From Leidyana gryllorum EB-2025a (lineage: Eukaryota > Protista > Apicomplexa), in contig JBLWGC010000140.1 in NCBI GenBank assembly GCA_048772705.1, positions 186,001 through 250,000 on the forward strand: a stretch of 64,000 bases of DNA, given 5' to 3'. Positions 16,901 to 55,613 of this stretch are shown here, piece after piece. Both the position numbers and the translations under genes were made by a program. Under the pieces are notes generated by a model, which worked only from the letters and a program-made list of their open reading frames with translations, was not told where the DNA came from and made no database searches. Position 1 is the first letter of the stretch; every line of letters begins with the position of its first letter.

Positions 16901-19900
16901 GCTGCTGATTGGCTGCTGAAATTCCTCACACTCAGTCCGGAGGAACGACGCGTGTGGATGGACCCTAATGCACCGAGAATGAGTGTAGACTCCCTTAACC
17001 CCCTCTGGACTGAGATGCTGTGCCACGAGATGGGTCAGGCCTCAGGGCCGCCCGGTTCTTGGACCTTTGTGAATGAATATGCGCTCAAGAGGAATCCGCG
17101 GATACAGTGGTTGGCTGCCCGTTGGAGGCCCAAAGTACTCTACCGTCCGAAATACCTCGTGGAGTTGGAGGATAGCGATGAAGAGGAGTTTCAGCATTTG
17201 CGATGGCCGAAGCAGCGGGGCCCGGAAGCGGATGTCGTTCGGATCACCGACACCGCGAGTTGTACAGGACGAATTCAAGGGTCGGGACGGCGGCGAGACG
17301 CTCGCGATCCGCGGCCAGTTCATTTTGATCGATGGCTGGTCCACTTCAAAGGGGAGACCATCCCGGATCCCCCGCCGGACATGAGATTGCTCAAACGATT
17401 GTATTCATCGGCGAAGAGACGGCAGTGCTGGTACAGTTGGGCTCGAACCCGAGTGACTACACTCAAAATACGCGAGGAAATGGTCGCTCGGCTCCTCTTG
17501 TCAACTTGGAGAAACTATGTGGTCAACCGATCGTGCGATGATCTCGACTCCATACTCCACCAATACGGCTTCCGGTGCGACATGCAGCCCTGGAGTGAGC
17601 CACCCAACAACAGACCAGACCCATCTCCATCGACTCGGAAGGGAAGAAGTCTCACCAGCTGGGAATTGGCCAAAGCGTGTATGGAGAGGAGCATCGAATG
17701 GGGCCGAACCGCCCTTGAGCAGGGCGTCACTTACTCTGAGACTCAGAGACAGTCTTTCGACGGTGAGGACTCAAGCCAACTGGTCGAAACCACACAGAGA
17801 AGGTGGGGCCAGATTGACTTCTTCTCCTTGCCGCCTCCCTACAAAACTGCAACCAAAGCACAAGTGGCAACGAGGATCAAAGCTGTCTCCGCAGTGCCCA
17901 AATATCAATCCTCCTTTGCCTCAAAGGCGGGACCGCTCCGCGGAGGCGCTCGCGGCCCCGCAAAGAAGGATCCCACACCTCGAGCCAAAGCCGTACCCAA
18001 ATCTCCCACTGCACCTCCCGCCCGCAAAGCCCCAAAAGCTTCTCCCGCACAACTCGCCATAACGGCCTCTCCCGTTCGAACACGTCACATGCGTACCCGT
18101 CTCCAAGTCGCCGTCCAAGATTCACCCCCGTGTCCTAAGCTTCCGGTCCGACTGGCCGAGCCGCCAACTGAAACCATCCCGCCGCCCGACACACGCACAG
18201 ACCCTCCCGCTGCCAGAGAAACCCCCCCCTCCACTGACACGCCGTCGGAGAAGGCCACGCGGGCCGCCAGACGACCTCAAAAGCGAACAGCGACCCCAAC
18301 TGACACTCAAACTGCGACACAAGAAGCACCCCAAGCCGAGAAAGCAGCCGCAGTCCGAGCCAAAGACAGAGCCGCCGCTCGCGCCCGAGCCCGAGTGGAA
18401 GCCCAACAGCCGAAACAAGTTGAAATCCAACCTGAAACACACACAGCCCCAATGGACAGCCGCACAATGCGACGCAGAAACCGGGACGCCGTCAGAGCTG
18501 CTGCTGAAGTGAATCACTCTCATAACGTGCCAACTGAACCGCAGACGACCGCCTCCGTTCCCAATCCACCAGCACTCCCGTCTGACACAACAGCTCCGGC
18601 TGAGGTCTCAGCTGAGCAACAAACGGAGGCCGCACCTCACTCGCGACCAGCGGTCCCCGCAGCGAAGATTCCGACAGAGACGCGACCCGCGGCCCCAGCG
18701 ACGATTCCCACCGAGACGCGTCCAACAGCCCCCGCAGGGAAGGCTCCGACAGAGACGCGACCCGCGGCCCCAGCGACGATTCCCACCGAGACGCGTCCAA
18801 CAGCCCCCGCAGGGAAGGCTCCGACAGAGACGCGACCAGCGGCCCCCGCAGCGAAGATTCCCACCGAGACGCGACCAGCGGCCCCCGCAGGGAAGGCTCC
18901 GACAGAGACGCGACCCGCGGCCCCCGCAGCGAAGATTCCCACCGAGACGCGTCCAACAGCCCCCGCAGGGAAGGCTCCGACAGAGACGCGACCAGCGGCC
19001 CCAGCGACGATTCCCACCGAGACGCGACCAGCGGCCCCCGCAGGGAAGGCTCCGACAGAGACGCGACCCGCGGCCCCAGCGACGATTCCCACCGAGACGC
19101 GTCCAACAGCCCCCGCAGGGAAGGCTCCGACAGAGACGCGACCAGCGGCCCCCGCAGCGAAGATTCCCACCGAGACGCGACCAGCGGCCCCCGCAGGGAA
19201 GGCTCCGACAGAGACGCGACCCGCGGCCCCAGCGACGATTCCCACCGAGACGCGTCCAACAGCCCCCGCAGGGAAGGCTCCGACAGAGACGCGACCCGCG
19301 GCCCCCGCAGCGAAGATTCCCACCGAGACGCGACCAGCGGCCCCCGCAGCGAAGATTCCCACCGAGACGCGACCAGCGGCCCCTGCAGCGAAGGCTCCGA
19401 CAGAGACGCGACCAGCGGCTCCGACTCAGACACAAACATTACCCACTTACTCGCGTTCAGCGGCCCCGGCAGCGAAGATTCCCTCCAAGACGCGACCCGC
19501 GGCTCCGACTGAGACACAAAGATTACCCACCGAGACGCGACCCGCGGCCCCCGCAGCGAAGATTCCCACCGAGACGCGACCAGCGGCCCCCGCAGGGAAG
19601 ATTCCCACCGAGACGCGACCAGCGGCCCCCGCAGCGAAGATTCCCACCGAGACGCGACCAGCGGCCCCCGCAGCGAAGGCTCCGACAGAGACGCGACCAG
19701 CGGCTCCGACTCAGACACAAACATTACCCACTTACTCGCGTTCAGCGGCCCCGGCAGCGAAGATTCCCTCCAAGACGCGACCCGCGGCTCCGACTGAGAC
19801 ACAAAGATTACCCACCGAGACGCGACCTGCGGCCCCGGCAGCGAAGATTCCCTCTAAGACGCGACCAGCGGCCCCGGCAGCGAAGATTCCCACTGAGACG

Positions 19901-22900
19901 CGAGCAGCACAGAATGGACCCAACGGTCAAGTCGAGACACCAGAGCCCATTTTGCACAAAGCTCGGCCTGACACTCTCACTGTGATCCAACCTGACACCG
20001 AGACTGACACTCAAGTGGGGTCTTCAGAGCCGCCTGCCACAGGAGGCAGCAGTGAGGTGCCGTCCGGGCCGCCTCCTCCTCCCGCGGGAGACCCGCTGCC
20101 ACCTCTGGAAGGCGCGGCGGTTGCCGATGAGACGATGGAGCCGCCTGATTTGAGGGTGTCGTTGGACCAGTTGGCGTGGGATGAGTTTGAGATGGAAGAA
20201 GAGGAGAGTGTGCCGCGAGAGCCTCGTCGGAAATCGATTCCACATCCGTTGTTCCCGGGTCGAACGGAGGGATGTCCGGTGGTCGGTAATCGACCCCGAA
20301 TAGTCCCTCTGGGCGCCGTAGAGGACTTTATGATGGGAGATGGTGACATTTCGGGTGTGCTTGCGTCCATTGGAGAGTACGACTTTGTTAATCGGCCGAG
20401 TCTGGTTGGCGACGAGTCACCGCCGGCGTTCTCACCGCCGGGGCCCGTTCCACTGCCGACCAAACTTTTGGGGACAGTTGAGGAGAGTAACACACCGGTG
20501 TCGGCCATACAGAGCCCCCAACGCATGGCCCCCATCCGAGTGGCCCCTGCTGAGTTTGAGGCGGCGGTTAAGACAACGTACCCGAGTCGACAAACAGATG
20601 AGTCGCCCCCGAAGATAGTTCCACAGCCGAGTGCGCCCCCGTCTAACGAGTGGCCATCGCCGTCGAGCATAAGCGTCGAGTCTGACTGGGTCGAGACCCC
20701 TCTGAACAGACTGCGAAAGAATGTGCCGTCTGAGCTTCGCCCAGTGCCGAGGATGCCTCCAATGCCACGAGACACAGCCGGCAAGCGGCTGGCAGATTGG
20801 GTGAAGCCCCCCTCGGAGACGTTGGTGGAGACACTGGGAGCTGCGGAGACGCAGGCCGGTGCGGAGACAATGAGAGCTGAGGACACTCAGCCAGCCGAGG
20901 AGGGTCAGGCAAAGGTGAGTTGGGGTGCGGTGATGTCTGAAAGTGGGCGTGGTGGTGTCGTCTGTCGCTCGGTGACAATTTCATTGCAGGCGGCGGCGGG
21001 TCCATGGTATCACGAAGGTGTGATGGAGATGTCTCGTTTTGGCGAGCATTTGAGTATGCAAGTTCCAAAGTATCGAATGCAAGTGTCCTCGGGAGTAGTA
21101 ACGGCCATCAGCAAGCGTAATGCGAACTTGTACGCGGTTCGCGACACGGGTGTGGACATGCCCGACCCCGAGTTGGGCGTAGCAGAAGAAGAGATGATGG
21201 AAGAAGGCAAAGGGGGTGGTGAAGCTGACCCGGTTCAGGAGTTGGAGAGCAAGGCGGCAATGTACGACAATTGGGCCAAAGTGGATCCGGACACAGCCCA
21301 CTCGTCGTTCAATCACTTCATGTCAGAGATTAAAAGGGATGGAATGCCCCGACCCCATCGAACACGTCAAGCAGCCCTGCCGGACCCCAACTATGAAGCC
21401 TTGTTAGAGCTTCTCAAGTTTGTTCCAGACGGCACGTCCCCAGCTGAGGTGTTGGACTTGCTGCACAAACACTTTGAGCGACATTGGCGCGAAGGGACTC
21501 CCCCCATTATACTGACTGAGGAGGAGGAGAGACTGCAGAAGTTCGGTAAACAGGCCGCCCGGATGGGCAAAAACGTAAACGTGGTGCTGGTGAAAGTCGG
21601 GGGCGTTGAGGTCCCCATGTTGGAACACGGTGGCAAGAACACAGCGAATCAGCGTGTATATAAACCCGACCCGGCGTGGTGCTCCTGGAGTGACGACGAA
21701 GATTGGCCCAAAGGCTGTCCAGAGGCCGATCCAGTGAGGGCAGCCATTCTGCGAAAAACCTACGGCGCCCACCGCGGACACCCACTGCGTAAGACGTGGC
21801 AGCCTCCACCTAAGGGGTACAAGAGCCCGCCGACGCCAGAGAATGAGAAGGGGGGTTCGACGAACAAGGCGGCTAATATCCCTCCTTTCCCGAATGGGGG
21901 TCGTAACACTTCCGAGTCGTCGGACGGCACTCCCAGGCCCCCTCGAGGCCCTAATTCTGGAAAGCGGTCTGCCCCGACAAACCGACCCTCGCGGAAGAAT
22001 CCTTTCAATGATGGAACTTGGTATCCCCCTGTGGTGCACAAAGAGTTGGCCCGCGAGATAGTGATGGCGGGGCCCGAGGGATTGGATCGTTTGGCTCAAT
22101 TGTTTGACGAGCCCGCAGACCCGGTGCCCAGGCCTTACCAGCCAGCTGCCCACCCGTCTGTGTTCACACTGGTCAACAAGATTGATCGAAACGTAATGCA
22201 GGTCTACGAAACACTGACGTCGGCCGACAAGAAAAAGTCTCGGGGCCGTCCCGGAGCTGCGCACAAATTGGCAGATCTGATGGTGGATTATGTGAGGAGA
22301 GATCCGGATTTGAAAGACGTCTTTTCAAAGTTGGCCAAGGAAACGGCAGAAACCGGTCAGCTGTCGCTCCAAAGCAAACAGGACGCCGCGATCAAAATGT
22401 TTGACGCCTGGTATCAACTGACGTCGATGAAATATGGCGACTTTATGAACGCCACATTCCGTGCAAAGATCGGCAAACCGGAAACCACTGATCTGAGTAT
22501 CTTGGGACCTCTATTGAAAGGTCGAGCCAAAGTCGCCTCCAAGTCTGTGAGCACCAATCCTTCACTGTCGTTGCGCGTACCAAATCAGCGGAAAGCCGCG
22601 ACTGCCGCCCAACCCAAGAAGACGTCTACCGGTATCCGACGAAAACATGTCCCGAAAGCTGGGGCGGCTGCTGACATCAAAGTCGATCCACTGGCGGGAC
22701 TCAGTCCGTTGGAGAGGGCATATTATCGACAGTATGAAGCGTACACTAAAGTGGTGACGGCCATTCGAGACCGCGACATCCGCTTAGAGCTCATTCCAGA
22801 TAACTACCCCGAAGCCGAAGGTGCACCGCGAGACAGGTCGAAGCGGCCTGCCCCGCCCACAATGTCGTGGCAGGAATACATTCACGCGAAATCGGTCGCC

Positions 22901-24523
22901 CTCAACACCATTAACTATTTGCGGAATAAGGCAGAGACAGTGCACCAATATGAGGTCCCCAAGAAGGTCGACCAGTGGAAGGGCATCCAAGCACTCAAAA
23001 ACCCCCCTCCCGACAAGGGGAAAGAAAAGCAACAGAAAGAAAGGCAACAGGAGGCACCACAGGAGGATAAACTGAAGATTGATCCTTCGCTGGTGGTCAC
23101 ATGTTGGGTCAATGAGATACTGTCCTATCTGGTCGTACTGATACGCACAGCCTTCCAACTGGAATTGGAGTATTTCGCGCGCATCGAGGAGAGTGTGCAG
23201 GGCCAACACACCAGTCTCGGATTGGAGGCCGAACGTCGAGTGTTCAAGAGCGATGAGCCCGTCGAGTGGTTCCACGCGGGAGGCCTGCCTGTCAGCTTCA
23301 TGAGAAGAACCAAAAGCGCACTGTGTCCTCCCCGAGGAGCCATGGAATGTCTAAGTGCAGACGGGTGCGTAACGGGACGCGTCCTGCCGGCGCTCTTTAG
23401 ACTCCTCCACGTCCGGAAGAATGTCGTATGCACCGGATACCACAGGTCGGAGCTCAAACGAATGCAACCAAAGTCCCTCACCCTCCAGAACTACGACGAA
23501 TGGCTGGATGAGAACGTTTACGATATGATTTGGTCGTCCCAGTTTGGCCTATGGTGGCTCAACTTGGCTCCTCTGCGCCACGTCCAGGGACTCATGATTT
23601 GGGAGAAAATGCTGAGAGAGAACTGCAAGCCGGCTGGGCCCTCGAAACAATCGGGACACCTCGTCATGTCCAAGAACGGCCCCGCCCTACCCAAACGGAA
23701 AGTCGCGGCCTACAAAGCATGGAAAGTCAGTCTGGGATTCCCATACACCTACGAGACAGAGTTGGGAATGACCTGCGACTCGGTCCTAAGCAAACGGCTA
23801 CAGGCGTCCCGCGTGAGCGAAATTCGCACACTCCTGTCTATGGGAATGAATGAGATCAATCAACATCTCCCGGTCAAAGAGAAGTTGAAAGAAATGGACA
23901 CTTACTTTGAGGCAGTGCAAAGGGACGACGAGGCCGTGGTGGGCTCGATGATTGTCGACGCTGTCAGGCGCAATGCCGTAGACAGCCAGTCAGGACTGCC
24001 CAACTACAGCGAAGATCTGCCCTGCTTCCAGAACGGCGTATTCAGATACCCCCCCATCCTCCTACCTCGGCTGGGGTACGGCCGCTACAACTTCTCTGGC
24101 ACCGGCCACAGATCAGCCAGTGGGAGGTACTGGGCTTCCAAACAGCCACCCAAGCCCACGGACGCTGACGCAAACGCTGACGCAAACGCGGACGCAAACG
24201 CTGCCGCGGGTGAGAGGAACGCTACCGCGGGTGTCCCCACGGCTCCCCCTCCCGCGGGTGTCGATAACGCTACCGCCGAGGGTGTCGAAAATGCAACGGA
24301 CGCTGACGACGCGGACCCTGAAGACGCGGACTCTGAAGACGCGGACGCTGACGACGAAGAGGAGGGCCCAGTAGACTACAGTCTTCAAGGATTGGTGAGC
24401 GGTTTGTTACACGCGCCATGGCAAATGGACGGGCGAAGCGCCAATCTCGTTGAGGCCAGATCATCGTTTGCAAAGACAGTTGAGCAGTATATGACTTTTC
24501 ATACATCGCAGTATGGGAGGTGA
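7979..24523 (+). CDS. Giant ~5,400-aa protein of unknown function, spliced from five track ORFs
   Basis: Phase-1 GT-AG introns at 8577-8626, 9692-9740, 9861-9906 and 10288-10376 join ORFs 7979, 8854, 9791, 9807 and 10316 in frame (16311 nt, divisible by 3). Confidence 0.8.
18642..19905 (+). repeat. Coding minisatellite of 33/36-nt units (PTETRP[A/T]APA[A/G]K[I/A]) with a higher-order ~285-nt duplication
   Basis: More than 30 copies of the ccgacagagacgcgacc/cccaccgagacgcg core. The PTQTQTLPTYSRS block occurs at 19421 and 19706. Confidence 0.95.
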
Positions 24524-34020: not shown

Positions 34021-35655
34021 ATGTTTAGATCACCGCCAACAGTACCGAGCTGCGAGATCGCGCCGTCTGTTAGTGGGGGAGGGCAAGAGAGTGAAGATTC
34101 TATAACGACTGTGTTGAGACGCAACTGGCTCAAAATCATGCCAGATGAGTTACGGATGGAGATCATATCGTATCTGGGAGATCCCTTGGATATATTGGGA
34201 GCCATTTACGGCCTCCATCCGGAATCTCTGAGACTTCAGCGTCAGTCATCATCTTCTGCGACTACCAGACTTTCGAGACCAATACCTCTCAGCCCCTCCG
34301 AGTACAAGCATTTGGCCCTCCTATGGACCCGAAGGACTGTGGCTGATAAGTGGTGGCGCGGGAGACCTGTTGTCGACAATACCCACAACGTCCCTCCGCC
34401 AACAATAACAATACTTCACTCCCCCTACGGCCGGGAGATAAAGACTTTAGATCAACAAGACTTGGACGGAGACGAGAATGAGCCGGAGTCTCCGTCTTCG
34501 TCTTCGCTGCCATCGTGTGTGGTTAGACTTTATATCTGTGAACGACGACTGTGTCGCGAGATCAATGATGGACGTTGGCGTCTACCTCGCACGGACCTCC
34601 CGACAGTGTTTGTCGCGGTCATGACGTGGATAGGACGATTCTTGCGAATGATTGAATCTCACATTGGGGGCATTAAAATCAAGAAATCAGTCGAGTTGAG
34701 TTTGGTTCTTTTGCGACGAATGCGGACGCTAATACCCGCCGAATTGATTCTGCAAACTTGTCGACGCCAGCTTCAACCTCTTCTGACCGAACTTGAGATC
34801 AGAGACACCCCTGTCCCAAAAGTTGCCGTCTCTGTCGACTCGAGTTCAACTGCATCGACACGACAGTATCCCTCGCAACACAAAGTGTTTGCGTCTCAAT
34901 CGTCGTTGGGGAGTCTCCAACGACGGTCGTACGGCGCCGAATACAGTCGTGTGGGTGCTCATCGCGGCAGTTTGAGTACGGGCACAGCAGGGGGGTCGGT
35001 TGGGGCTCTGTCAGAGTCCTTGTCGTCGTCTGGTATATCTCTCGACGGGACTATCAGTTCAGATGAGGATTTCGACGAGGACGACGATTTCCATCAAGGC
35101 GGTGCTTGGCTGGCGGCACGTCACTATCAGTATCTGGAAGGTGTAAAGCACCTGGCCTTTATGGTCAGAGACAATGACCCGTTACTGCGGGTGGTTGCGC
35201 AGAGTCAATGGGACTCACTCGAGTCCATAGAGTTACACACAATGTTCAATGTGGGCGGTTTGCGCACGGGAAACGGCTTATCGTATTTGTTGGACGCTAT
35301 CAGTAACGTTCCTAATCTGGTGGTCGAGATCTATCTCGATCCGCGGGGAGACGCCCCAGTGACTTGGAAAAGAGCCATCAGCTTGTTGACGCACGGATCG
35401 TCTGTCAAAGTGTTTCTGGGGGCTGCAGGGATCTCTGTCGATATGGTGGAACGCGCACTCAAGGATCCAAGTGGTAACACCGCTGTTTTGGACTACATAG
35501 AGTTCCTGGCGGAGAGTGTGAAAGGCTTCGTTCCCGACCACAATCACCAGGTAGAGCTCGGCTACTTTCTCTGTCGCAAAGATGAGCCCTCTCCCCCGCC
35601 CAACCCACTCCTCCGACCCCACTATTACTCTTTCACCAAAAGATTTGCCACTTAG
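34021..35655 (+). CDS. F-box-like protein
   Basis: N-terminal LKIMPDELRMEIISYL matches the F-box consensus. Intronless ORF. Confidence 0.6.
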   Translation: MFRSPPTVPSCEIAPSVSGGGQESEDSITTVLRRNWLKIMPDELRMEIISYLGDPLDILGAIYGLHPESLRLQRQSSSSATTRLSRPIPLSPSEYKHLALLWTRRTVADKWWRGRPVVDNTHNVPPPTITILHSPYGREIKTLDQQDLDGDENEPESPSSSSLPSCVVRLYICERRLCREINDGRWRLPRTDLPTVFVAVMTWIGRFLRMIESHIGGIKIKKSVELSLVLLRRMRTLIPAELILQTCRRQLQPLLTELEIRDTPVPKVAVSVDSSSTASTRQYPSQHKVFASQSSLGSLQRRSYGAEYSRVGAHRGSLSTGTAGGSVGALSESLSSSGISLDGTISSDEDFDEDDDFHQGGAWLAARHYQYLEGVKHLAFMVRDNDPLLRVVAQSQWDSLESIELHTMFNVGGLRTGNGLSYLLDAISNVPNLVVEIYLDPRGDAPVTWKRAISLLTHGSSVKVFLGAAGISVDMVERALKDPSGNTAVLDYIEFLAESVKGFVPDHNHQVELGYFLCRKDEPSPPPNPLLRPHYYSFTKRFAT

Positions 35656-35692
35656 TATTTAGAGCCACTGGACAGATACACGACTTTTGTAA

Positions 35693-36846
35693 TTATATAT
35701 GCAGTACTCCGAAAAACGCATGGAAACCACTGGCCACCATATTCCCATCCAATAGAAATGCCCGTCGCCAGAACGTTATCACATACGAAAAGACCGGAGT
35801 CTGCATCAACCGAAGGGGTCGTCCAGTTTTTGTACAATAAACAAGAGAGATAGAGAGAGACTCACCGTAGTCCCTATCACATAGATCAGACCGAAAGTCA
35901 CCAATGCCATCGTTCGCGGATTCCAACGACTCGCCCCCAACCATCGCTTCAGCCAACACGTGGGGGACAGATAGGGACTCACCACTCCCCAACCTGACGC
36001 GAGATTCAGTATAACGGGGAGGGGGCGGACTCACCGTCGAGTGGAGGTAAGGGCACCAGATTCAGCACACAGGCCATCCCCTGTAGCACAATTAAAACAC
36101 TCCAAGCTTTTCCGGTGCTGCCGCGTAGAGCCCAGTCACTCCGGGCAAAGAGCTTTGAAAAGAAGGCTGCGACGCAGACAGAGTATCAATTGGCACAGCC
36201 ACTTCAATTCAAAGCTCACTGAGACTGGCGAGGAGCACTCGGAGAGCGATGGCGAAAAGCAGATTGTTGAGAGGGCCCGCGATGGCCGTCATAGCTTCCC
36301 ATTGCCGGGACCTCAGATTTCCGGTTTGTACCAAAACAGAACCACCCGGGAGGGCAATACCGCCGAGGATAAGGAGTAATACGGGTAATATCAGCGACAT
36401 GACGGGATCCATATACAGAAGAAAGTTCAAAGTGAGGTACCCGCGAGCCAGAACCGATTGGTCACCTCCCCAATAAGCGCTGAGAGCGTGACCGTATTCA
36501 TGAAACGTTAAAGACAGAATCCATCCGGCCACCACAATTAGCCACAGCAACAGCTGAGAAGCAACAAGTCGATGGGTCCGTCAGCCAGCGGAACTTACAG
36601 CTGACCCAAAGTATACCCCGACAATCGACCACACGCCGAACAGTGACACTAAGAGTATGAAGGCCAGACTAACAGCCTTTTGTTTCGATCGACTCTCGAC
36701 ATTTTGAAGCTCCAAGTCTACGCTGGGCTGCCTCCACAGCATCTTTTGGATCAGTGCCCATTTTTTGTCCACGCCCACACAGATCGATACACAATCATCA
36801 CAACTCACCCGCCGGGAGGGGGGGGTTCAACTCCCCTCTGAGACAT
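35693..36846 (-). CDS. Site-2 protease / peptidase M50 family membrane metalloprotease, multi-exon
   Basis: TFHEYGHA (HExxH), AGPLNN, and NLVPLPPLDG in a downstream exon; several TM segments. Start approximate. Confidence 0.88.
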
Positions 36847-37040
36847 AACGGCCCAAAAAATCGATCACAACTGATACTGTCAGCAGAAAGTCAGCATCAA
36901 TTTTTTGTCTTCATCCTTCTCACTCATCGAGCCTTTCACTAACCGAGCAGTTGATTGGCCACTCCCCCATTCCCGCGATTGGGCTTTGGCACCTTCGCCC
37001 CGCCCCGCCCCCTCCCCTCCCTCACAGCGCATTGCTTCGC

Positions 37041-37141
37041 ATGATGACAACCTATGCACGCGGAGTCTCGTCTAATGGTAAAGTTCGTGTGAACCGAGCC
37101 ATTGGATAGGACGGTGACTGGCGAAGGATTATGAGATCTGA
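37041..37141 (+). ncRNA. Box C/D snoRNA, SNORD97-like guide for Cm34 of elongator tRNA-Met(CAU)
   Basis: C box ATGATGA 37041, D box CTGA 37138. Guide GGATTATGAGA pairs with UCUCAUAAUCC and the D+5 rule lands on C34. Internal hairpin tctaatgg/ccattgga. Confidence 0.8.
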
Positions 37142-37159
37142 GACAATTTGTGTGTGACT

Positions 37160-37293
37160 GAGGCTGCTGGCGTTCCATCACGTGGCTCTTCCAGCCCGCG
37201 TGGGGGGTCATAAAGCAGCCAGACCGACTCGTTGCCTGCTCGAGGTCTCTTCCCCACCAATGGAGGTCGACCTCTTCTAGGCTTCGGACATTC
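37160..37293 (+). ncRNA. Box H/ACA snoRNA, copy A (LSU UUAUGAC-U-G-AACGCC pocket)
   Basis: Two hairpins (ggctgct/agcagcc; gcct/aggc with gaggtc/gacctc), H-like AGACCG, ACA at 37288. Paralog at 38114. Confidence 0.75.
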
Positions 37294-37310
37294 CCTCCTG
37301 AATGCGTGTC

Positions 37311-37440
37311 TCTGCCAGCGTCGCTAATCTTCACTCGCTACAATGGGGTGAAGATTGGTACGCTTGGCGACATTGATTGGTTGCCTCTTCCATGCGCTGA
37401 CCGCCCCGTCCGGCGCCAGGGCCCACCGGTTACCTACATC
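37311..37440 (+). ncRNA. Candidate H/ACA-like two-hairpin RNA
   Basis: Near-perfect hairpin gccagcgt-gctaatcttcactc/gggtgaagattggt-acgcttggc, a second hairpin with gcgctg/cggcgc, ending ACAtcc. H box non-canonical. Confidence 0.4.
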
Positions 37441-37452
37441 CTGCGTGCAAAT

Positions 37453-37517
37453 ATGATGACAACACATCCGCCTTGCTGAGGCTCCGGCCTTTGAGGGTAC
37501 TGTTGTAATGAGACTGA
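37453..37517 (+). ncRNA. Box C/D snoRNA, SNORD57/snR51-like guide for SSU Am99/Am100
   Basis: C box 37453, D' CTGA 37476, D CTGA 37514. Guide ACTGTTGTAATGAG pairs with SSU CUCAUUA(C)AACAGU, and D+5 is the A of CUCA. Confidence 0.75.
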
Positions 37518-37538
37518 TCAATATTCCACGAATCCTGT

Positions 37539-37588
37539 GTGATAATCAATGGATCCCAGTGCCCTTCACTGTTCACCACCTTCTCTGA
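37539..37588 (+). ncRNA. Candidate minimal C/D guide RNA
   Basis: Degenerate C box GTGATAA, D box CTGA 37585. GTTCACCACCTT is complementary to LSU-like AAG(G/A)UGGUGAAC. Only 50 nt long. Confidence 0.3.
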
Positions 37589-37620
37589 CCCCGCCACCCG
37601 ACCCAATCCTCGTCCCACAA

Positions 37621-37690
37621 ATGATGATTCCAAGTTGCCGCCCCAGTCTGACATTTCTCTGACTGAAAAGGCAAATGCAGTAATTTCTGA
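37621..37690 (+). ncRNA. Box C/D snoRNA SNORD31/snR67-like, copy 1
   Basis: ATGATGA...CCGCCCCAGT-CTGA...TGACTGAAAAGG...TTTCTGA. Guide pairs with the LSU P-loop ACUGGGGCGG and D'+5 is the E. coli G2251 equivalent. Confidence 0.9.
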
Positions 37691-37720
37691 TCTCAACCTA
37701 TTGATTCCTCTCCCCAATTT

Positions 37721-37745
37721 CACACACACACACACACACACACAC
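37721..37745. repeat. (CA)n microsatellite between snoRNA copies 1 and 2
   Basis: Seen directly. Confidence 0.9.
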
Positions 37746-37775
37746 TCTATTTCTCTTCCCTTTTTCGGTATTCAG

Positions 37776-37845
37776 ATGATGATTACAAGTTGCCGCCCCA
37801 GTCTGACATTTCTCTGACTGAAAAGGCAAAAGCAGTAATTTCTGA
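37776..37845 (+). ncRNA. Box C/D snoRNA SNORD31/snR67-like, copy 2
   Basis: 70-nt near-identical copy with intact boxes and guide. Confidence 0.9.
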
Positions 37846-37895
37846 TCGAATTTTGTCTCCACTTCCCGTTTCAGATTGTGTCCACTGTCCCACAA

Positions 37896-37965
37896 ATGAT
37901 GATTACAAGTTGCCGCCCCAGTCTGACATCTCTCTGACTGAAAAGGCAAATGCAGTAATTTCTGA
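37896..37965 (+). ncRNA. Box C/D snoRNA SNORD31/snR67-like, copy 3
   Basis: 70-nt near-identical copy with intact boxes and guide. Confidence 0.9.
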
Positions 37966-38011
37966 TCCAACTTGTGTGTCTGTTCTGTCTTGATGTGAGG
38001 TGGTGTCTCGA

Positions 38012-38081
38012 GTGATGATTCCAAGTTGCCGCCCCAGTCTGACATCTCTCTGACTGAAAAGGCAAAAGCAGTAATTTCTGA
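38012..38081 (+). ncRNA. Box C/D snoRNA SNORD31/snR67-like, copy 4
   Basis: 70-nt near-identical copy with a GTGATGA C box. Confidence 0.9.
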
Positions 38082-38113
38082 CTTGACGACGACCATCGAA
38101 GCATAATTTGTGG

Positions 38114-38250
38114 GAGGCTACCGGCGTTCGCTGCATTGGCTCTCTTCAGCCCAATGTAACGGTCATGAGGTAGCCAGATCAAAGTGTTCCCTGCTCGAGG
38201 CGCTTCTCCTTTACCTATGAGACGAAGCCTCTTCTGGGACTCATACATCC
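38114..38250 (+). ncRNA. Box H/ACA snoRNA, copy B
   Basis: Stem ggctacc/ggtagcc, canonical H box AGATCA 38176, second hairpin, ACA at 38245. Pockets match copy A. Confidence 0.8.
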
Positions 38251-38271
38251 GTCCATCCCTTCGGAATAAGT

Positions 38272-38410
38272 GGCTGTCTTCTGAAACAAGTCCTCGCGAA
38301 ACCGACAGCGAGCGTCTTGATGTCCCGACAGCAAAACCAAATCTCGTGCTGTGGTCGCTCAATGGTCTCTTCGTTCTTACAGAGTTGGCCGCCGTCTACA
38401 ACCCACAACC
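38272..38410 (+). ncRNA. Candidate box H/ACA snoRNA (target not identified)
   Basis: Stem gctgtc/gacagc with an internal loop, H box AAACCA 38334, second hairpin tgtgg/ctaca, ACA at 38405. Confidence 0.55.
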
Positions 38411-39407
38411 CTTTACAGAATCCAAACACTGCATACAGCAGCGAGCAAAGCCGCAAACTCTTTCGAAAACCTAAAGAAGACAGTTTAGCGTCACGAATCA
38501 CAGAGAGACACGCCACAAATATGTTCAGTGCTGCCTACAATTGTGATCATGTTGACAGAGTTAACAGATGCCTTTGCACCTCATGTCCCAAAAGACTTCA
38601 GAGTAACTACTTAATGAACGGTGCACCTAAGCAGGCAGTCATATGTCTCGTCGGGTAGTGCCGGTCGTAAGCAGCGTGCAACAATAAGAACGGCGACAAC
38701 TGCTGGATTGTCGCCACCGGCCAGGACCGGTCCGGCGGGTGTCTGTGTCTCCGGGGCCGGCCGGCCCGGAGACGGAGACACAGACTAACACAGAGGAACA
38801 CAGAAGCTTAGAATCCGAGGCACTCAAAAAACCACTTTTTTACACGAACCCAGATAGATCATACTCCAAAAACATCCAAACCGGACCCAATTCCCGGAGT
38901 GGACCTAGATCGGGCCCGGTCGGTCCCCCCAGGGCTGGCCGGGACTACAAAACAGAGACATTGTCGGCAACCGGCCAGGTCGAGAGATTAGGGAGACGCC
39001 GTCTCCTTGCGCACATTACGGTACCACAGTGCTGCAAATGATGCATAGAGATACCACAATCCCCAACACCTCATCAATCTCGAAGTGGAGGCAGCAGGAA
39101 TAGGGAGGTGACTTGAGCAACGCCCACCAAACGGTGATGTCTGGAGGCCGTAAGTCGAATAAAAGAAAACTCGTCGCAACCGAACGACGGGACACTTGGG
39201 AAGTGTACGTGGTCACTCGATGTGCCCAGCTGCCCTTTCCGACGAAGCCGGGTGCCCCGTGTGCTTCCTAATTGAGCCTCGTCGACTGCTGAAACTCTTT
39301 GTCGTCTCCAGATGAATAGAGACGAAACGACCTCAAGTGTTGACTTGGCGGCCAGCAGGCCTGGGTACTTTACAGAGGCGAAGGGAATCAATGAACGGAT
39401 GAGCGAT

Positions 39408-39458
39408 GGAAGGAAAGAGGGCGACAGAAGGAAAGCGGGCGACAGAAGGAAAGCGGAC
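39408..39458. repeat. 18-nt tandem repeat gaaggaaagcgggcgaca (~3 copies)
   Basis: Seen directly. Confidence 0.75.
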
Positions 39459-39614
39459 AATGGGTACGCTGAGTCTATCTATGTGGGGCGACTGGCACTG
39501 GGGCGACTCGTACAGAGGCGACTGCGAAATTTCAAAAGTCGGTAAAGTTTGGTTTGCGCCTGTCGTCGCAGAATTTGATTTGGATTAGGCGCTTCCGGCA
39601 AGTGGGTGTGAGAG

Positions 39615-40739
39615 ATGAGCAAACTGGTGCCGACAATCCGGCGGAGTGTTTCCACCAATGGAACACACAGTCACACCACCCACGGGTGGTCTTTGTGGTT
39701 AGAGGCCTCGCTTGCAGGGTGGTGCTGTTCGACAGACACTACTTCAGTAGAGGACATTGCCACGGTACCTTCATTCTTACCACAGGAGGTGGACCTGAAC
39801 GCGGAGCCCCCGGCATTTTGGCGTCTGCCAGGTCTGCCGCAGACGCAACCTTTGGATCCGAAGTTTGCATTTCTGTGTCACAGAGTGGGCCCACGCTGGC
39901 ATGAGACTCCAATGATGACGTATCTGTGGTCTCATCGCGAGAGCCCGAACGACGGATGGATTACAGTCTTACCTCGGGCTGGGAGACAGTACTTCCACGT
40001 GTACGCCGGACCCGACAGCTTCCGCGAGGACGGAGAGACTGGGGCAGTGATACCAAGTCTGGGCTTTCAGTCCGTTTGCACTTGGGCAGCAGTGACCTGT
40101 GAGAAATCAGGACAGATTTTAGAGGTATCCACAAGGGGGGGGCCCATTACGAAAAAAGCCGTTCGAAAGCAACGGTTAATGAATTGGGCTGTTCTCCGTG
40201 ACCCTTCGACCGTCGTGGAGACAGCTGCAGCACCGGTGACCGATCAGGGGTGCATCGCTTTGACCGCGATGGCGGACGAGGAGCGGAAAAAGTACTCTCG
40301 AAGGTTGTTGAGCCTCGAGGTCGATGCAATACACGCCAAGTCAGCCGTGAATGTGCCCGTCAAAGACTGGAGGTGCAGTCCCAAGACTGTGCAGCTACTC
40401 TATCTGCAGCGAGGGTCTTCAACAAGGTTTGCGGGGCAGTTCTTCAAGGCGTTGGAAGCCTTTGCCGGCAGCTTCATGGGAGGCTGGGTGTCCATCGAGT
40501 GCATTGACGGCGAGGGCTACCGATACGACTTTAAATGGGGAGACGCCGATCAAGTAGTACATGCGCATAGACGCGTGGTGGTCACTGGTGAAGGCTGGGA
40601 GGGAAAAGATGTGCCGCAGCCCGACGAGAAATCCTCCAAAAAGCGATCCTCCAGCAGCAGCAGGAAGCGGTCCCCCAGCAGCAGCAGGAAGCGGTCCCCC
40701 AGCAGCAGCAGAAAGCGGTCCAGCAGCAGACACCGCTGA
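39615..40739 (+). CDS. Orphan family member 1 with C-terminal SSSRKRSP repeats
   Basis: 374-aa ORF that shares motifs with the next two ORFs; 24-nt repeats at 40640-40730. Confidence 0.7.
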   Translation: MSKLVPTIRRSVSTNGTHSHTTHGWSLWLEASLAGWCCSTDTTSVEDIATVPSFLPQEVDLNAEPPAFWRLPGLPQTQPLDPKFAFLCHRVGPRWHETPMMTYLWSHRESPNDGWITVLPRAGRQYFHVYAGPDSFREDGETGAVIPSLGFQSVCTWAAVTCEKSGQILEVSTRGGPITKKAVRKQRLMNWAVLRDPSTVVETAAAPVTDQGCIALTAMADEERKKYSRRLLSLEVDAIHAKSAVNVPVKDWRCSPKTVQLLYLQRGSSTRFAGQFFKALEAFAGSFMGGWVSIECIDGEGYRYDFKWGDADQVVHAHRRVVVTGEGWEGKDVPQPDEKSSKKRSSSSSRKRSPSSSRKRSPSSSRKRSSSRHR

Positions 40740-51000: not shown

Positions 51001-52339
51001 CTGGCTCCACTTAGCCAACGAGCACCCAGCGCTCGTTACTGCAGGCCACTTCAAAGTTGGTCTCTTCAACAGCGGTCTGCGAGCTGCAACCATCCGGGAG
51101 GCCCAACAGATGGGACTGACCGCAGAGGGGCTTTCGCACGTGATAGCCAAGGGACTCGACTTACAGCTGTTGTTGTCCAGTGATTCCGCGTGTATCTTGT
51201 CGGACGCCGAAGTGCTGAGCAAATTGACGGCTCAGTCATTGTCCACTTGGATTGCTCCGGCTCTGCGGAGCAGCCATCTCGATGCCGGTACCATGCTGCC
51301 GAGGATCAGGAAAGTCATAGAGCGTCAGAAGGCCAATGCTGGGGACACTTTGACTTTGCTGAGCAAATGGTATGTGCGGTTACCGGGTCGGACTGCGTCT
51401 CTCTCTCGAGCTTTGTTGAAATTGGGATCAACTCACTCTTACAAAAGTCTCTGCGCGTGGGATCGATCTTTGAGAGACAGTTATTACTCCCAGGATCTCA
51501 GACCAGTCGCGGTGTCCGGATACAGTGAAGGGACCGTCTCGTGGATGTTGGAACATTTTAACTCGCGGGAAATCGAGCAGCTTTGTGCCCGTCAATACAG
51601 CGAGCCTGTTGTGGCATTCCTCAAGAGACTCAGTGTCCCAAAAGTCCGCGAGTTCTTGAACGGATATCAGTATCTCAATCTCACAATCGAAGCAATGCTG
51701 AGTAACGTGGAGATGGATAGGTCGTCGTCGCCGGAAGCCAATGCCGAAATTGTTTATCGGTTACTCACCGCGAGCAAAGTGGAGTCAATCTCGGAAGAAC
51801 CCTATCTGAACGACTCTGAGGTTCAGGCTCTGGCTTTGCGACAATTCGATCATCAGCCACTGATGGATATCATAGACGCGCTGGAAGCCGAGTCGAGGCG
51901 CTCGAGTCTGAAATTCCGTATTGGGTTCTGCGTGAACATCGACGACGCCATCGCCGAGATTGTGCGACAAGACACAGGGGGTCGTGTGAGACGCGAGTTT
52001 GTGGACAAAATCTTTGGGCCGGAAGACAGTCCCTTCGCCGCACCTCTATTGAGCAACGCGGCACTCAACTGTCTCCTGATGGTCTGTGACGAATGTGAAT
52101 CCTTGGAGCAAAAGGTTGAACTCCTCGCACAGATCGGAAGCCGCGGATACACTTCAGACGATATAGTCCGATTACTCACTGTGGCCGGCGGCGTCGCAAA
52201 CTACCGCACCATCATCAAGTTGGTCAAACTGTACCGCCACGACGATTTTCAAAGGGCTTTCGACGATTACTCCCATCACAGACTCACCCGAGGCCACTTC
52301 TGCCAACTCATGTTGAACCCCTCTAGCAGGACCCATTAA
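45002..52339 (+). CDS. Large hypothetical protein (ordered N- and C-terminal regions, polyproline, long disordered centre)
   Basis: 2445-aa ORF. The T-tract plus CAG at 45036-45049 suggests the true 5' end may be spliced. Confidence 0.8.
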   Translation: MNSIAAPLGRSNFFFQRLRTPGMGPSVRSRNGREVYSVHKRLIQCIEFLSLMQDTTLAAGVVEGPQQRLSRCYQELSRTDRQWKLYDRMTLRRALRAMLEAELRHEAASRPLQTTTDFDTLDTAITDLDSATHSQSPTSSTQGGYCPAEEAHEALVETMATYLEHILPDRCARLRAGGDSLKSKLWRADVERLVERLVDRSIPRGTKREKKKYSARAKCEAIIRQLSLWLNHESDGDNRHSSNSPSASTSCLQLISADVQPFICPKWECPTKTFTLNRSEVSEGWTLGDLYRPGAVHVPIDFCDSFVIPSGEVSRDHLDFPLELTELLERVLDLIYKSPPDTYHKVRVSMVETEGGPIFFRAVLMAATPVFLTSPVLGWFRPTSSSRTLDLWATPDHAGARDRKPRTTQITAVRGNQYIGYKFRPGDADGKGVIATPNRVVGIQIDTKSVEDPTIYGLEKLHLKVIYRLMDDYDVTPFTHSLYVTADRVELRKLPAEDNSSSYGHQVIANVHIPSGEKMLTCSPFCFLTVKNRGSAEWNKAMRTAQSIDYDISKLHTVCHDDYLRHLCFQQVNPHVRRERDNHIIGATIFAFQNRIRRDEARNLILSDIPLTEIGDITPTRRDTPIQQQDAPVADDSIPPPPPPPPFQLPPGNPPLDETVQRNSLALLTELRNNAQFKRRSHTDSTTPRQSPRDDLPPPTHSTRHSSIDLNGLRDSTPSARIGGGIPETETANGGHQSGPFHSNAHRISSLHEIESRQTDMSRGADDIVWERMPCVLSHDEHHHHHHRGWEPTAEAIQPASKYPAPVNGYPHSYLSGADSVRPDLSYDQQSQMAAVEHRNGDYVEYETPSRADLWFLQKGTRDTTDSPNTPIHRQQCYEHGLILPEDMEQRCSMSAVPHDAFPFHHARREVHGPPVPGHQARFVSEEEDVPGSLQSHHDANGRGAALNARGLPISPPYDDYRVWRPSAANAEAVHNSDIANSSFHPGPNECGLPTVDLRRESGEQYGGEYVSDGLHWAPFVPRGRLADWASQGDPSLQGQQHQVFAAAEGRGRFEVDGELSPDFTAPFPQDLHELPDFIHLDTIKYENELLPASGAKGGPVSSRRSSGATYYSAVDNYDGEADVTTGLDNPDGLIGIRSAALSYAAEVGQQWSEFDGDCDAEVEHFTSRSPSRRSPGQSQTPMNDFERSTQTPHYQEGMDREGFVPIKKAEPTTILNQQRFGPHGADNGATGIAGTQFANVVPEVSALSSSEPFTTLPGIAHYSAAKGNFDYRTPSHFERKRPQRTTESLGAEMRTAEPSRRPVDAAAVGPRSPVGQSPKGDAAAQKPNALFASPVTGLLSTELPLPTMTFTPPVDNTEMRSAFLTSLFAPESEERMSQSPFVVGTSDHSLERNVSPSPFREENTPQQSPAPIVGSTAEDGRHFVTPRSTPTKKASVEGGSQDSTAGSPSGLALIAGEGSVTISPSRGGERQSPSRGGNDFLGTPPVSSTPRIVGMRAKSSLVPTVGVSSKPESPKSPQLSSTTADLLAFAQSTFEPTSIDPASSVPTATLAVSDDDFILTADATHPPIPFRRASAVVITRSDAEGTVTPINLQPLSPSELQSPVIDPPSEVGSTPLEAEVLEDEKSVTINATGRPRSSPSPAEQQQRVGTAPPLPGSDNVDGTPSATSTTFVLHSPISAVMKGTEPQVAGPTLLHQIHNASLEQRTTPTLETRSTTPVDVQENSPEDEALIADAVVQTVEPGTRESSSEYHEALSLCQEGVREMEQQPQTNVESIEEEHNERMGDGDGDVFLNEPIRSSSFDPNLLRAPGLNRVDSTPERSSWPRVRGVGQRLKAKILQPLSRATEAVKNSIASSLPTTQNAGGIQLSGATAIRDDTSRTAETPVVVESPERVVTVSTRDDSVSRSSRTEPTVSWEGPARLLSKLKGRQQLEITPALSQEVKRIVGKYKWAKQATEDLDRLPLSLTDKIRVAEILGGEKAAWDALKRADEAYVRLEGSNWLHLANEHPALVTAGHFKVGLFNSGLRAATIREAQQMGLTAEGLSHVIAKGLDLQLLLSSDSACILSDAEVLSKLTAQSLSTWIAPALRSSHLDAGTMLPRIRKVIERQKANAGDTLTLLSKWYVRLPGRTASLSRALLKLGSTHSYKSLCAWDRSLRDSYYSQDLRPVAVSGYSEGTVSWMLEHFNSREIEQLCARQYSEPVVAFLKRLSVPKVREFLNGYQYLNLTIEAMLSNVEMDRSSSPEANAEIVYRLLTASKVESISEEPYLNDSEVQALALRQFDHQPLMDIIDALEAESRRSSLKFRIGFCVNIDDAIAEIVRQDTGGRVRREFVDKIFGPEDSPFAAPLLSNAALNCLLMVCDECESLEQKVELLAQIGSRGYTSDDIVRLLTVAGGVANYRTIIKLVKLYRHDDFQRAFDDYSHHRLTRGHFCQLMLNPSSRTH

Positions 52340-52876: not shown

Positions 52877-55613
52877 TCAGTTGGATGACGGTCGCTGTCT
52901 TCGGCATCGAAGCCACCAAGTAGCAGCTGCGGCTGTCAAACCCAACATAACAATGGGGGTGGCAGGGTGACGTAGAATATTTGTGGCTCGAGCAACTACT
53001 GATGATGCTGTACTCTTCTTATTGTTCTCAGCCTCCCGGTTGGGTTTGGGTGTCGCTTCAGTTGTCGTGGTCGAAGGCAAAGTCAATTGCTCGACCCACT
53101 GTACTCGACCAACCGCCACATCCACAGAGTCCAATTCCTCATCCGTGGTGGACTCGCCGGTCGCTGACTTTCTCATCCCAATTCGCTTCCGGGCACCGCC
53201 CTGAGCGCTCCAATTCCCGCCACTCGACCGTTCGTCCGCCTGTTGAGCAGCTGCCACCGCCAATATGGACTTGACCACCTCTTGATCGATTTTGACAACT
53301 CCACAGCTGGGCATCTTGGAACAGTCCCAGTGCTCTATCTTGAGCGTAGAAGGAATGTTCGGGTGCTCCTCGCAGCCACGGAAGGTCTGAAGTTGGATCT
53401 CATTAGACTCTAGCGACTTCACCATGTAGGTATCTTGCAGACTGTATCCAAACTTGCGGTAATAGTTTCTCGTACCCACTCCCGCAATAATGACCATCCG
53501 ATCGAAACCTTTGCAAAGTGCCAAAGCCTCAGCAGCCAACAACAGTCCGCGGCCGAAACCGCTATGTTGATACCGCTTGTCTTCCTTTCCCTTTGATTTC
53601 TCCGTGGTCGAGACCAACATCCCGTAAACGTGAAGCTCGCGGATCAGAGCCGTCTGCTCATTCTGCAAACATGGGAAAGGCGATTTGAACTTGAGTGCCT
53701 CCTCGTCGTCACCACCGGTCACAGACATCCGCTTCGGCAACCGTAGTCGAAGGAATCCGAACAAAGTACGGCCATCCTCAGTTTCGAAGCTTATAAAGTA
53801 TTCCGTTCCGCCAAAAGTCTCGTAGCTTCGTACCATCAAATGCCCATCTTTGATATTCTTAATCTCCAATCGAATCTCTCGACATCGCATACACTTGCAG
53901 GCCCATCCCATCTGGGTACTCGCCTGCTCCAAGAGTTGTCTCAAATTCGTTTTGCTGTTTCCAGCGATAATGCTCGGATTCGGAATGTCACGGACCACTC
54001 GATTTAACCGAATCCAAGGATACACCAGCCTCTTCACCTGGAGTACCATACTGATCAACTCTATCTCCCCTTGTTGACCGCCTTCAGTGTAGGGCCGATA
54101 TCGCCCCTCCTCGTACCACTTAGCAATCGTGCTGAACGGTGTCACTTCGCACGGATATATCTTCCATTGATCAGCCTGCAATCCCTCGTGACGTAACACT
54201 GTGTCAAACATCAGGCGATCCTTCTCCACGTCCGATCCGGGCAAATCTGGCATAAGGTGAATGTCCACCTTAAAACAACTGTCCTTCAACAGACGGATCG
54301 CTCGAATGGCATCAGCCGTCACACAACCTCTGTTGATCGCCTTGAGTATATTGTCATCCGTGTGTTGAATACCAATCTGTACGCGCGTACACCCGTACCG
54401 CCGTAAACGACGTAATTCGTACTTGTTGATGTAATCAGGCCGGGTCTCTAATGTCAACCCAATCACCTTGCAGGGCGCATCTTCGTTTAGACGCTGCTCC
54501 TCTTCCAATGACAGTCGCTCACGCAACCCTTGTGGAATGGGACAAAGGATGTCTTCTATCGGCCTCTCTGGCTCCCCAGGCAATGTCGTCGATACCGCAC
54601 TGGAAGGCAACCCGAAACTCAATTCCATGAACTTCTCAAACTCGTTAGCAGCATAGAATAGGTCACGGACAAACTCCTCTTGATATGCCGGATCGTAACC
54701 ACTCCATGTTCCTCCCAGCACTAGAATCTCAATCTTGTCAACTACGTGCCCGTTGCGCTTCAATGTGCGAGCGCGATCCCAAAATTGACGTGCTGCATCC
54801 CATCCACATTGATTGCCTCGCAATACTGCATGACCGAAAAGTATAGTAACAAACTTGCTCAATTCTCCACTCACCAGCAGGCTCAGTTGACAAATAAGAC
54901 CGTGGCTGACCAGGCTCATTGGGGCAATAATGACAATTCTTGGGACAGCTAAAAGCTCCTGGACTCGTCAATACGGTGATCACCGCCACTCCTGTAAGAT
55001 TACAACGTTCGAATTACAATATTTCCAACGGCACAAAGCAATCAAGGGACAAGTATTACACACACGCGCGCTCGAACACGCGACAAACGGAGACGTGGTG
55101 CAATCACAACGCGACAAACCACTTCTGCGGTCTGTTTACTTCAAACCGACTACAACGGTCGGTTTTGATTGCACTACCACGAAATCTTTACGTACCAGAC
55201 GAGGTGCGAACGGCACGCTTAGTCAACAGATTGACCAAACTAGGATGAGGCCTGGCCGTCCCATCAGCCTGACATAGTTTCAGGACATGGGCAATTTTAC
55301 TCTTCGAGGGACTGAGACGATGCTTCTTGCGTAATTGAGACATGATAGATTCGAGCTCAGCTGCGGACTGAATCTCGTCTGGATGGGCCGCCAGGTCGCG
55401 TACAAAGGCGAATAGCGCCGTGTCTTCCTCACATTCGGCCTCCAACTTGGCCTCATAAGTGCGCCATGCTTCCATCTGTTGCGCGAATGACTCCAGATGT
55501 CGCCGAGTATGTTCATTCTGCCAATCCTCAGCAGTCACCTGAGCAACTTCGCCTGCTCGCTTGCGGAACGTAGGCTTGTTAGCTGGGAAGAAATCGGCCA
55601 ACCCCTCCTCCAT
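52877..55613 (-). CDS. ELP3: Elongator protein 3 (radical SAM + GNAT) with C-terminal transmembrane tail, 3 exons
   Basis: AVRTSSGVAVITV, CPKNCHYC, LGGTW, LETRPD, HLMPDLPG, RELHVYG, QHSGFG; tail IVMLGLTAAAATWWLRCRRQR. Confidence 0.95.

Follow-up and report, generated by a model that had tools for sequence, protein, structure and literature searches.

Architecture of the unit and its gene neighbourhood

At positions 37041-37141, on the plus strand of the window (by which we mean the whole 64-kb stretch of DNA that was analysed), lies a predicted box C/D RNA. It opens a cluster of snoRNA genes, all on this strand, within a region (35655-39615) that is free of ORFs. A box C/D unit had been proposed here by an earlier, sequence-only reading of this DNA, and both of its boxes, ATGATGA at 37041-37047 and CTGA at 37138-37141, read as that reading described. 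The unit and the rest of the cluster comprise the following features.

37031-37034 (+): 5′ half of a distal terminal stem, AUUG, paired with 37144-37147 in the predicted fold
37041-37141 (+): whole predicted box C/D RNA, 101 nt from C box to D box, with mature ends probably a few bases further out
37041-37047 (+): C box AUGAUGA (DNA ATGATGA), a perfect RUGAUGA
37048-37060 (+): 5′ spacer or possible D′ guide, without a convincing rRNA target
37065-37112 (+): internal hairpin in the minimum-free-energy fold, which would juxtapose the D′ and C′ regions
37113-37119 (+): probable C′ box GGUGACU, which retains the UGA core and precedes the D box by 18 nt
37125-37137 (+): D guide AGGAUUAUGAGAU (DNA AGGATTATGAGAT), which pairs with nt 42-30 of elongator tRNA-Met
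37138-37141 (+): D box CUGA (DNA CTGA)
37144-37147 (+): 3′ half of the distal terminal stem, CAAU, paired with 37031-37034 in the predicted fold
37160-38260 (+): rest of the snoRNA cluster
about 37160-37295 (+): H/ACA-like unit
37453-37517 (+): compact 65-nt C/D unit with two functional-looking guides (D′ for LSU G1789, D for SSU A100)
starts at 37621, 37776, 37896 and 38012 (+): four SNORD31/snR67-like C/D copies
about 38100-38260 (+): H/ACA-like unit

In the predicted fold, the C and D boxes of the first unit would be brought together by one adjacent C-G pair and the 4-bp distal stem. This is a weak stem, and those of the neighbouring C/D units are no better. The fold z-score for the whole 37041-37141 RNA is only -0.94. 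Two candidate D′ boxes, CGGA (37061-64) and CUAA (37072-75), are both degenerate, and when either was taken as the D′ box, no guide match exceeding chance was found in the organism's own rRNAs and tRNAs. The unit is present as a single copy in the 15.5-Mb genome. In searches against Rfam 15, the locus matched no family, either at gathering score, as applied to the whole window, or at E ≤ 10 over 36900-37300. No tRNA genes were found within the window.

The compact unit at 37453-37517 provided a positive control for the rRNA sequences used and for the D+5 rule, by which the fifth nucleotide before the D box selects the target. The D guide of this unit forms 14 Watson-Crick pairs that select SSU A100, a position that by number corresponds to the conserved Am100 of yeast 18S rRNA, and its D′ guide selects LSU G1789 (10 Watson-Crick pairs and one G·U). 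For the four repeats beginning at 37621, the rule gives LSU G2492 as the target; they also resemble Rfam SNORD31/snR67, with matches (E about 2e-5) that do not reach gathering score. These neighbouring C/D snoRNAs resemble the first unit in strand, in box architecture and in their similarly weak terminal stems; they pair with rRNA, however, whereas the first unit is without an rRNA target and pairs with a tRNA. The first unit and its neighbours probably derive from one precursor. Another C/D-like unit may sit at about 37540-37588.

A fibrillarin gene is present in the genome (C213:212095-212879), where it matches in two pieces. The first of these contains one in-frame TAG, for which a short intron is the likely cause.

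The sequence-only reading had also assigned the DNA to an alveolate lineage. The best PDB matches of the genome's RPL3 (L064:1420-2592, minus strand) are 5xxb (644 bits), 9ygm (589 bits) and 3j79 (578 bits), all ahead of plant, fungal and animal proteins. The entry 5xxb is the Toxoplasma ribosome and 3j79 that of Plasmodium. The closeness of RPL3 to these two proteins supports an alveolate origin, with the scope of an apicomplexan-type placement.

Two open frames elsewhere in the window were also recorded. With its Radical_SAM and Radical_SAM_C domains, a 680-aa ORF at 52877-54919 (minus strand) resembles Elp3, an enzyme that modifies wobble uridines of tRNA; the protein-atlas clusters nearest to it have mostly giant-virus and archaeal members. 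A 4735-aa open frame at 10316-24523 (plus strand) includes a stretch of 66% GC (18-20 kb), and a search for PDB relatives at E ≤ 1e-10 found none.

Predicted pairing with the anticodon arm of elongator tRNA-Met

The guide core GGATTATGAGA occupies 37126-37136 and is followed by T37137. G37133, at D+5, faces C34 of elongator tRNA-Met. A scripted scan anchored at D+5 returned this same nucleotide as its top target, with 12 Watson-Crick pairs and one G·U over nt 30-42 of the tRNA.

U37137 with G30: G·U wobble
A37136 to G37126 with U31 to C41: Watson-Crick
A37125 with U42: Watson-Crick

The sequence-only reading had claimed exact complementarity to tRNA nt 31-41, with C34 selected by the D+5 rule. 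Both claims were borne out, and the duplex proved one pair longer at each end (A37125:U42 and U37137·G30).

The target 11-mer TCTCATAATCC occurs 173 times in the 15.5-Mb assembly, compared with three occurrences of a reversed control. Nearly all of the sites that we fetched (28 of 30) are 73/74-nt tRNA-Met(CAU) genes within a very dense tRNA array. Because the commonest of these genes has G1:C72 and a T54-type T loop, we identify it as the elongator. A different tRNA-Met gene, with A1:U72, GGGCTCATAACCC and an GATCGAAAC T loop, is the initiator. The sequence UCUCAUAAUCC is present in the organism's own elongator gene, and the anticodon arm, which the earlier reading had singled out for checking, matches the guide exactly. 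The initiator (GGGCUCAUAACCC) is not a match, as it would pair with the guide over 7 bp only. Three 11-mer sites outside tRNAs (L019, L030 and L040) matched no Rfam family.

Contigs such as C11, C43, C61 and C81 (loci L001-L039) carry very dense tRNA gene arrays that use both strands and mix tRNA species, at about 10-15 genes per 3 kb. The rDNA unit (L044, C73:1-7459, and L048, C157:1-10000) lies directly beside a tRNA array and includes a 5S gene encoded on the other strand. Two partial rDNA units lie inverted relative to each other on contig C73; an assembly artefact or a palindrome could account for this.

Position 41 of the tRNA differs between lineages. About 170 copies of the gregarine elongator tRNA-Met have C41 (reading ...AAUCC) and eight have U41; the eight would form a G·U pair with G37126 of the guide. 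U41 (UCUCAUAAUCU; TCTCATAATCT) is found in every animal and plant elongator tRNA-Met listed by Vitali and Kiss (PMC6601510, supplementary Fig. S4). The guide differs in step with its target: G37126 faces the lineage-specific C41 here, and human SCARNA97, by its probe sequence, has A at the facing position, with the human and plant data as reference. Of all the evidence for selection on the pairing, we consider this compensating difference the strongest single item.

The organism's own rRNAs, recovered by pattern and DNA query, were as follows.

L044:457-2234: SSU rRNA
L044:2305-2457: 5.8S rRNA
L048:5309-8537 (minus): LSU (25S-like) rRNA
L048:4912-5031: 5S rRNA

The scan found no target comparable to C34 of elongator tRNA-Met in the SSU, 5.8S, LSU and 5S rRNAs, in the available ETS/ITS rDNA spacers, or among 53 tRNA species. 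The next-best target, which is also the best rRNA site, was 5.8S C83, with only 8 Watson-Crick and four G·U pairs. The better rRNA target that the sequence-only reading had named as a possible objection was not found in the rRNAs and the available rDNA spacers.

Complementarity of this length is not in itself rare. Matches of 12 nt between tRNAs and the 64-kb window are common by chance, and the case therefore rests on the coincidence of several features. There are 608 CTGA sites on the two strands of the window, and when guides were anchored at D+5 and compared with 9.3 kb of the organism's own rRNA and tRNA, 10 of them reached at least 12 Watson-Crick pairs. With a RUGAUGA added 50-170 nt upstream, all cases with at least 10 Watson-Crick pairs fell in the cluster at 37041-38081, except one. 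That one, at 60116 (minus strand), was rejected as a low-complexity CTGA repeat. Out of the 9.3 kb of possible target, the guide at 37125-37137 lands on the single tRNA nucleotide known to be C/D-modified in other eukaryotes.

Two further tRNA matches in the window were noted. At 51651-51690 (minus strand), the 20 nt before a CTGA (51670) form 14 Watson-Crick and three G·U pairs with the anticodon region of tRNA-Lys(CUU); because this pseudo-guide lacks a C box and falls, in antisense, within a 2445-aa ORF, we treat it as probably due to chance. A run of 16 nt at 38694-38709 (plus strand) is perfectly antisense to nt 68-83, at the 3′ end of tRNA-Ser(AGA/CGA/UGA). This run lies within a small inverted repeat, 0.4 kb past the downstream end of the snoRNA cluster, and no D box follows it. 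It may be a relic tRNA fragment.

Together, these observations lead us to the computational prediction that 37041-37141 probably encodes a box C/D guide RNA for Cm34 of elongator tRNA-Met. The basis of this prediction is the boxes, the register, the complementarity, the lack of a better target, the cluster and the fibrillarin gene. If expressed as we suppose, the RNA would form an RNP with Snu13, Nop56, Nop58 and fibrillarin, in which the 13-nt D guide would pair with nt 30-42 of the opened anticodon arm of elongator tRNA-Met(CAU) and fibrillarin would then 2′-O-methylate the wobble cytidine C34. That RNA-guided anticodon methylation might exist in alveolates had been suggested by the sequence-only reading; the anticodon-arm match, the absence of a better target, the lineage, the cluster and the covariation at position 41 support it as a prediction.

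A second contact with the same tRNA may be considered. The sequence ACCUAUGC at 37050-37057, just 3′ of the C box, could form 8 bp (7 Watson-Crick and one G·U) with nt 24-31 of elongator tRNA-Met, adjoining the main duplex. This pairing is weak: in shuffles, P was 0.036 for a match anywhere in the tRNA and 0.0085 for an adjacent one, and other tRNAs score higher against the region. It is doubtful that the RNA holds the tRNA at two sites (nt 30-42 by the D guide and nt 24-31 by 37050-37057). Were it to do so, nt 24-42 would be covered jointly by the two elements, which would assist the opening of the anticodon and D stems, and the arrangement would resemble the "extra base-pairing" described for some rRNA snoRNAs. 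If real and common to eukaryotes, an element of this kind would give similarity beyond the guide itself and so favour common descent from an ancestral tRNA-Met guide.

Metagenomic candidates and alternative explanations

We scanned metagenomes with the pattern TGATGA, followed by 60-90 nt and GATTATGAGATCTGA, and obtained 15 contigs or loci. Five C/D-like units combine the tRNA-Met guide, the spacer U and the D box.

L050:134-217 (+)
L060:82-179 (-)
L049:1439-1536 (-)
L053:110-202 (+)
L057:3361-3444 (-)

The L050 unit, with clear C′ and D′ boxes and a terminal stem of 6 bp without mismatch, is likely to be a real C/D RNA. Those on L060, L049/L056, L053 and L057 are plausible as such. Several of the remaining contigs were set aside as probably chance matches or coding sequence. 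The GC content of the contigs that carry these five units ranges from 24 to 45%. None of the candidates is related to the gregarine unit outside the guide, and none has an Rfam match. Their alignment shows conserved boxes and guide around a free interior, a pattern that is mostly imposed by the search itself. A UGA-containing motif lies at the C′ position in five of the six tRNA-Met guide candidates aligned. L060 has an element like 37050-37057 at the same place, and as judged by eye only, the bases of this element would follow the 28-42 pair implied by its own D guide. The metagenomic scan suggests that a tRNA-Met guide may be present in many uncultured eukaryotes.

How the gregarine guide came by its target is a separate matter. 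It may work as described and yet have arisen independently of the SNORD97/SCARNA97 guides of animals and plants, by convergence on the same target. We regard this as quite possible, though we lean away from it. Its likeness to SCARNA97 and to the metagenomic candidates is confined to the boxes and the target-constrained guide, no covariance model matches, and the gene belongs to a polycistronic cluster here whereas the vertebrate genes are intronic (PMC6601510). On the other hand, the spacer base and the register are the same as in human, and inheritance more simply accounts for the reported presence of such guides in animals, plants and archaea. Because target-constrained sequence is the only similarity, descent and convergence fit the present data alike.

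It is also conceivable, but unlikely, that the locus encodes a genuine, expressed C/D snoRNA that makes no use of its complementarity to tRNA-Met, either as an orphan, or acting on an snRNA or mRNA, or as a chaperone. Our target scan covered rRNA, rDNA spacers and tRNAs; many C/D RNAs are orphans, and the 5′ guide of this unit has no convincing target. Against this, the 13-bp duplex puts D+5 on exactly the one tRNA site that C/D RNPs are known to modify elsewhere, in other eukaryotes and in archaea, and the guide tracks the lineage-specific C41. Furthermore, the three 11-mer sites examined outside tRNAs match no Rfam family.

Finally, a chance juxtaposition or relic, in which an antisense tRNA-Met fragment came to lie beside C/D-box-like sequences without forming a functional RNA, has some grounds in a genome with thousands of tRNA copies, in the frequency of chance 12-nt tRNA matches within 64 kb, in the antisense tRNA-Ser fragment only 1.5 kb downstream and in the unremarkable fold z-score, but is highly improbable given that the tRNA similarity ends exactly at the guide borders with no decayed tRNA flanks, that the C box is perfect and stands at the right distance on the right strand, that the unit heads a snoRNA cluster, and that the register, which is the same as in human SCARNA97, falls exactly on C34.

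Relation to known tRNA-Met guides

Guidance of tRNA modification by snoRNAs is rare in eukaryotes, and the guide for Cm34 of tRNA-Met is the best-documented case. Vitali and Kiss (2019; PMC6601510) showed that in human cells SNORD97 and SCARNA97 (formerly SNORD133) direct the Cm34 modification of elongator tRNA-Met(CAT). The two human paralogues lie in introns of EIF4G2 and LARP4 and have an anti-angiogenin role. The authors reported homologues in all vertebrates examined and, in supplementary Fig. S3C, one candidate gene each for insects, Ciona, Arabidopsis and rape. An archaeal box C/D sRNA guides Cm34 of the same tRNA (Joardar et al., 2011, as cited in PMC6601510).

A very ancient origin of this guide had been put forward by the sequence-only reading. 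The alveolate candidate strengthens that proposal, but the idea is not new: a widespread and ancient tRNA-Met guide is already in print, as Vitali and Kiss (2019) had the insect, Ciona and plant candidates together with the archaeal guide (PMC6601510). The earlier reading knew of no such guide in this group, and our literature search (with the guide motif, and with SNORD97 plus protist names) likewise found no report of a tRNA-Met Cm34 guide in alveolates. A candidate in a gregarine-like apicomplexan, with a compensating change, would extend the guide system to the SAR supergroup, and this extension would strengthen the dating of the system to at least the last eukaryotic common ancestor and perhaps to an archaeal ancestor. 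It also gives a concrete target assignment for one snoRNA in a group in which few snoRNAs are described, and makes GAUUAUGAGAU-CUGA a marker motif for seeking the guide in further protists. Known biology is thereby extended, with no new mechanism.

The closest known counterpart is human SCARNA97. Its 3′ end, as implied by the published probe, reads ...AAGAUUAUGAGAU-CUGA / ...GGGUAAGAUUAUGAGAU-CUGA (PMC6601510), so that its last 15 bases (GAUUAUGAGAU-CUGA, including the spacer U) are, as far as the probe implies them, identical to those of the gregarine unit. Both RNAs use a D-box guide that places C34 at D+5 in the same register, and the duplex is 12-13 bp in both. They differ in that the gregarine guide has G opposite C41 where SCARNA97 has A, and forms one extra pair with U42. 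The gregarine unit is 101 nt long with an internal hairpin, whereas SNORD97/SCARNA97 have 142 nt or a pyrimidine-rich insert. It is a single-copy gene in a polycistronic snoRNA cluster, in contrast to the two intronic human paralogues; a second gene corresponding to SCARNA97 was sought in the genome and rejected, as the guide followed by CUGA occurs nowhere else and a site at C211:497-512 has AUGA and no C box. By Rfam or covariance model, the gregarine unit is not recognised as a homologue of SNORD97/SCARNA97. The sequence-only reading had called the unit SNORD97-like; because no Rfam model matches the locus, this description holds as a functional analogy and not as a statement of family.

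The single candidates of insects, Ciona, Arabidopsis and rape resemble the gregarine unit in that each genome has one gene, with an invariant D guide against elongator tRNA-Met, known by prediction only. These candidates belong to Opisthokonta and Archaeplastida and face tRNAs with U41, whereas the gregarine tRNA has C41. The archaeal sRNP and the predicted gregarine guide have in common an RNA-guided, fibrillarin-type 2′-O-methylation that is directed, or in the gregarine would be directed, to the same nucleotide of the same tRNA.
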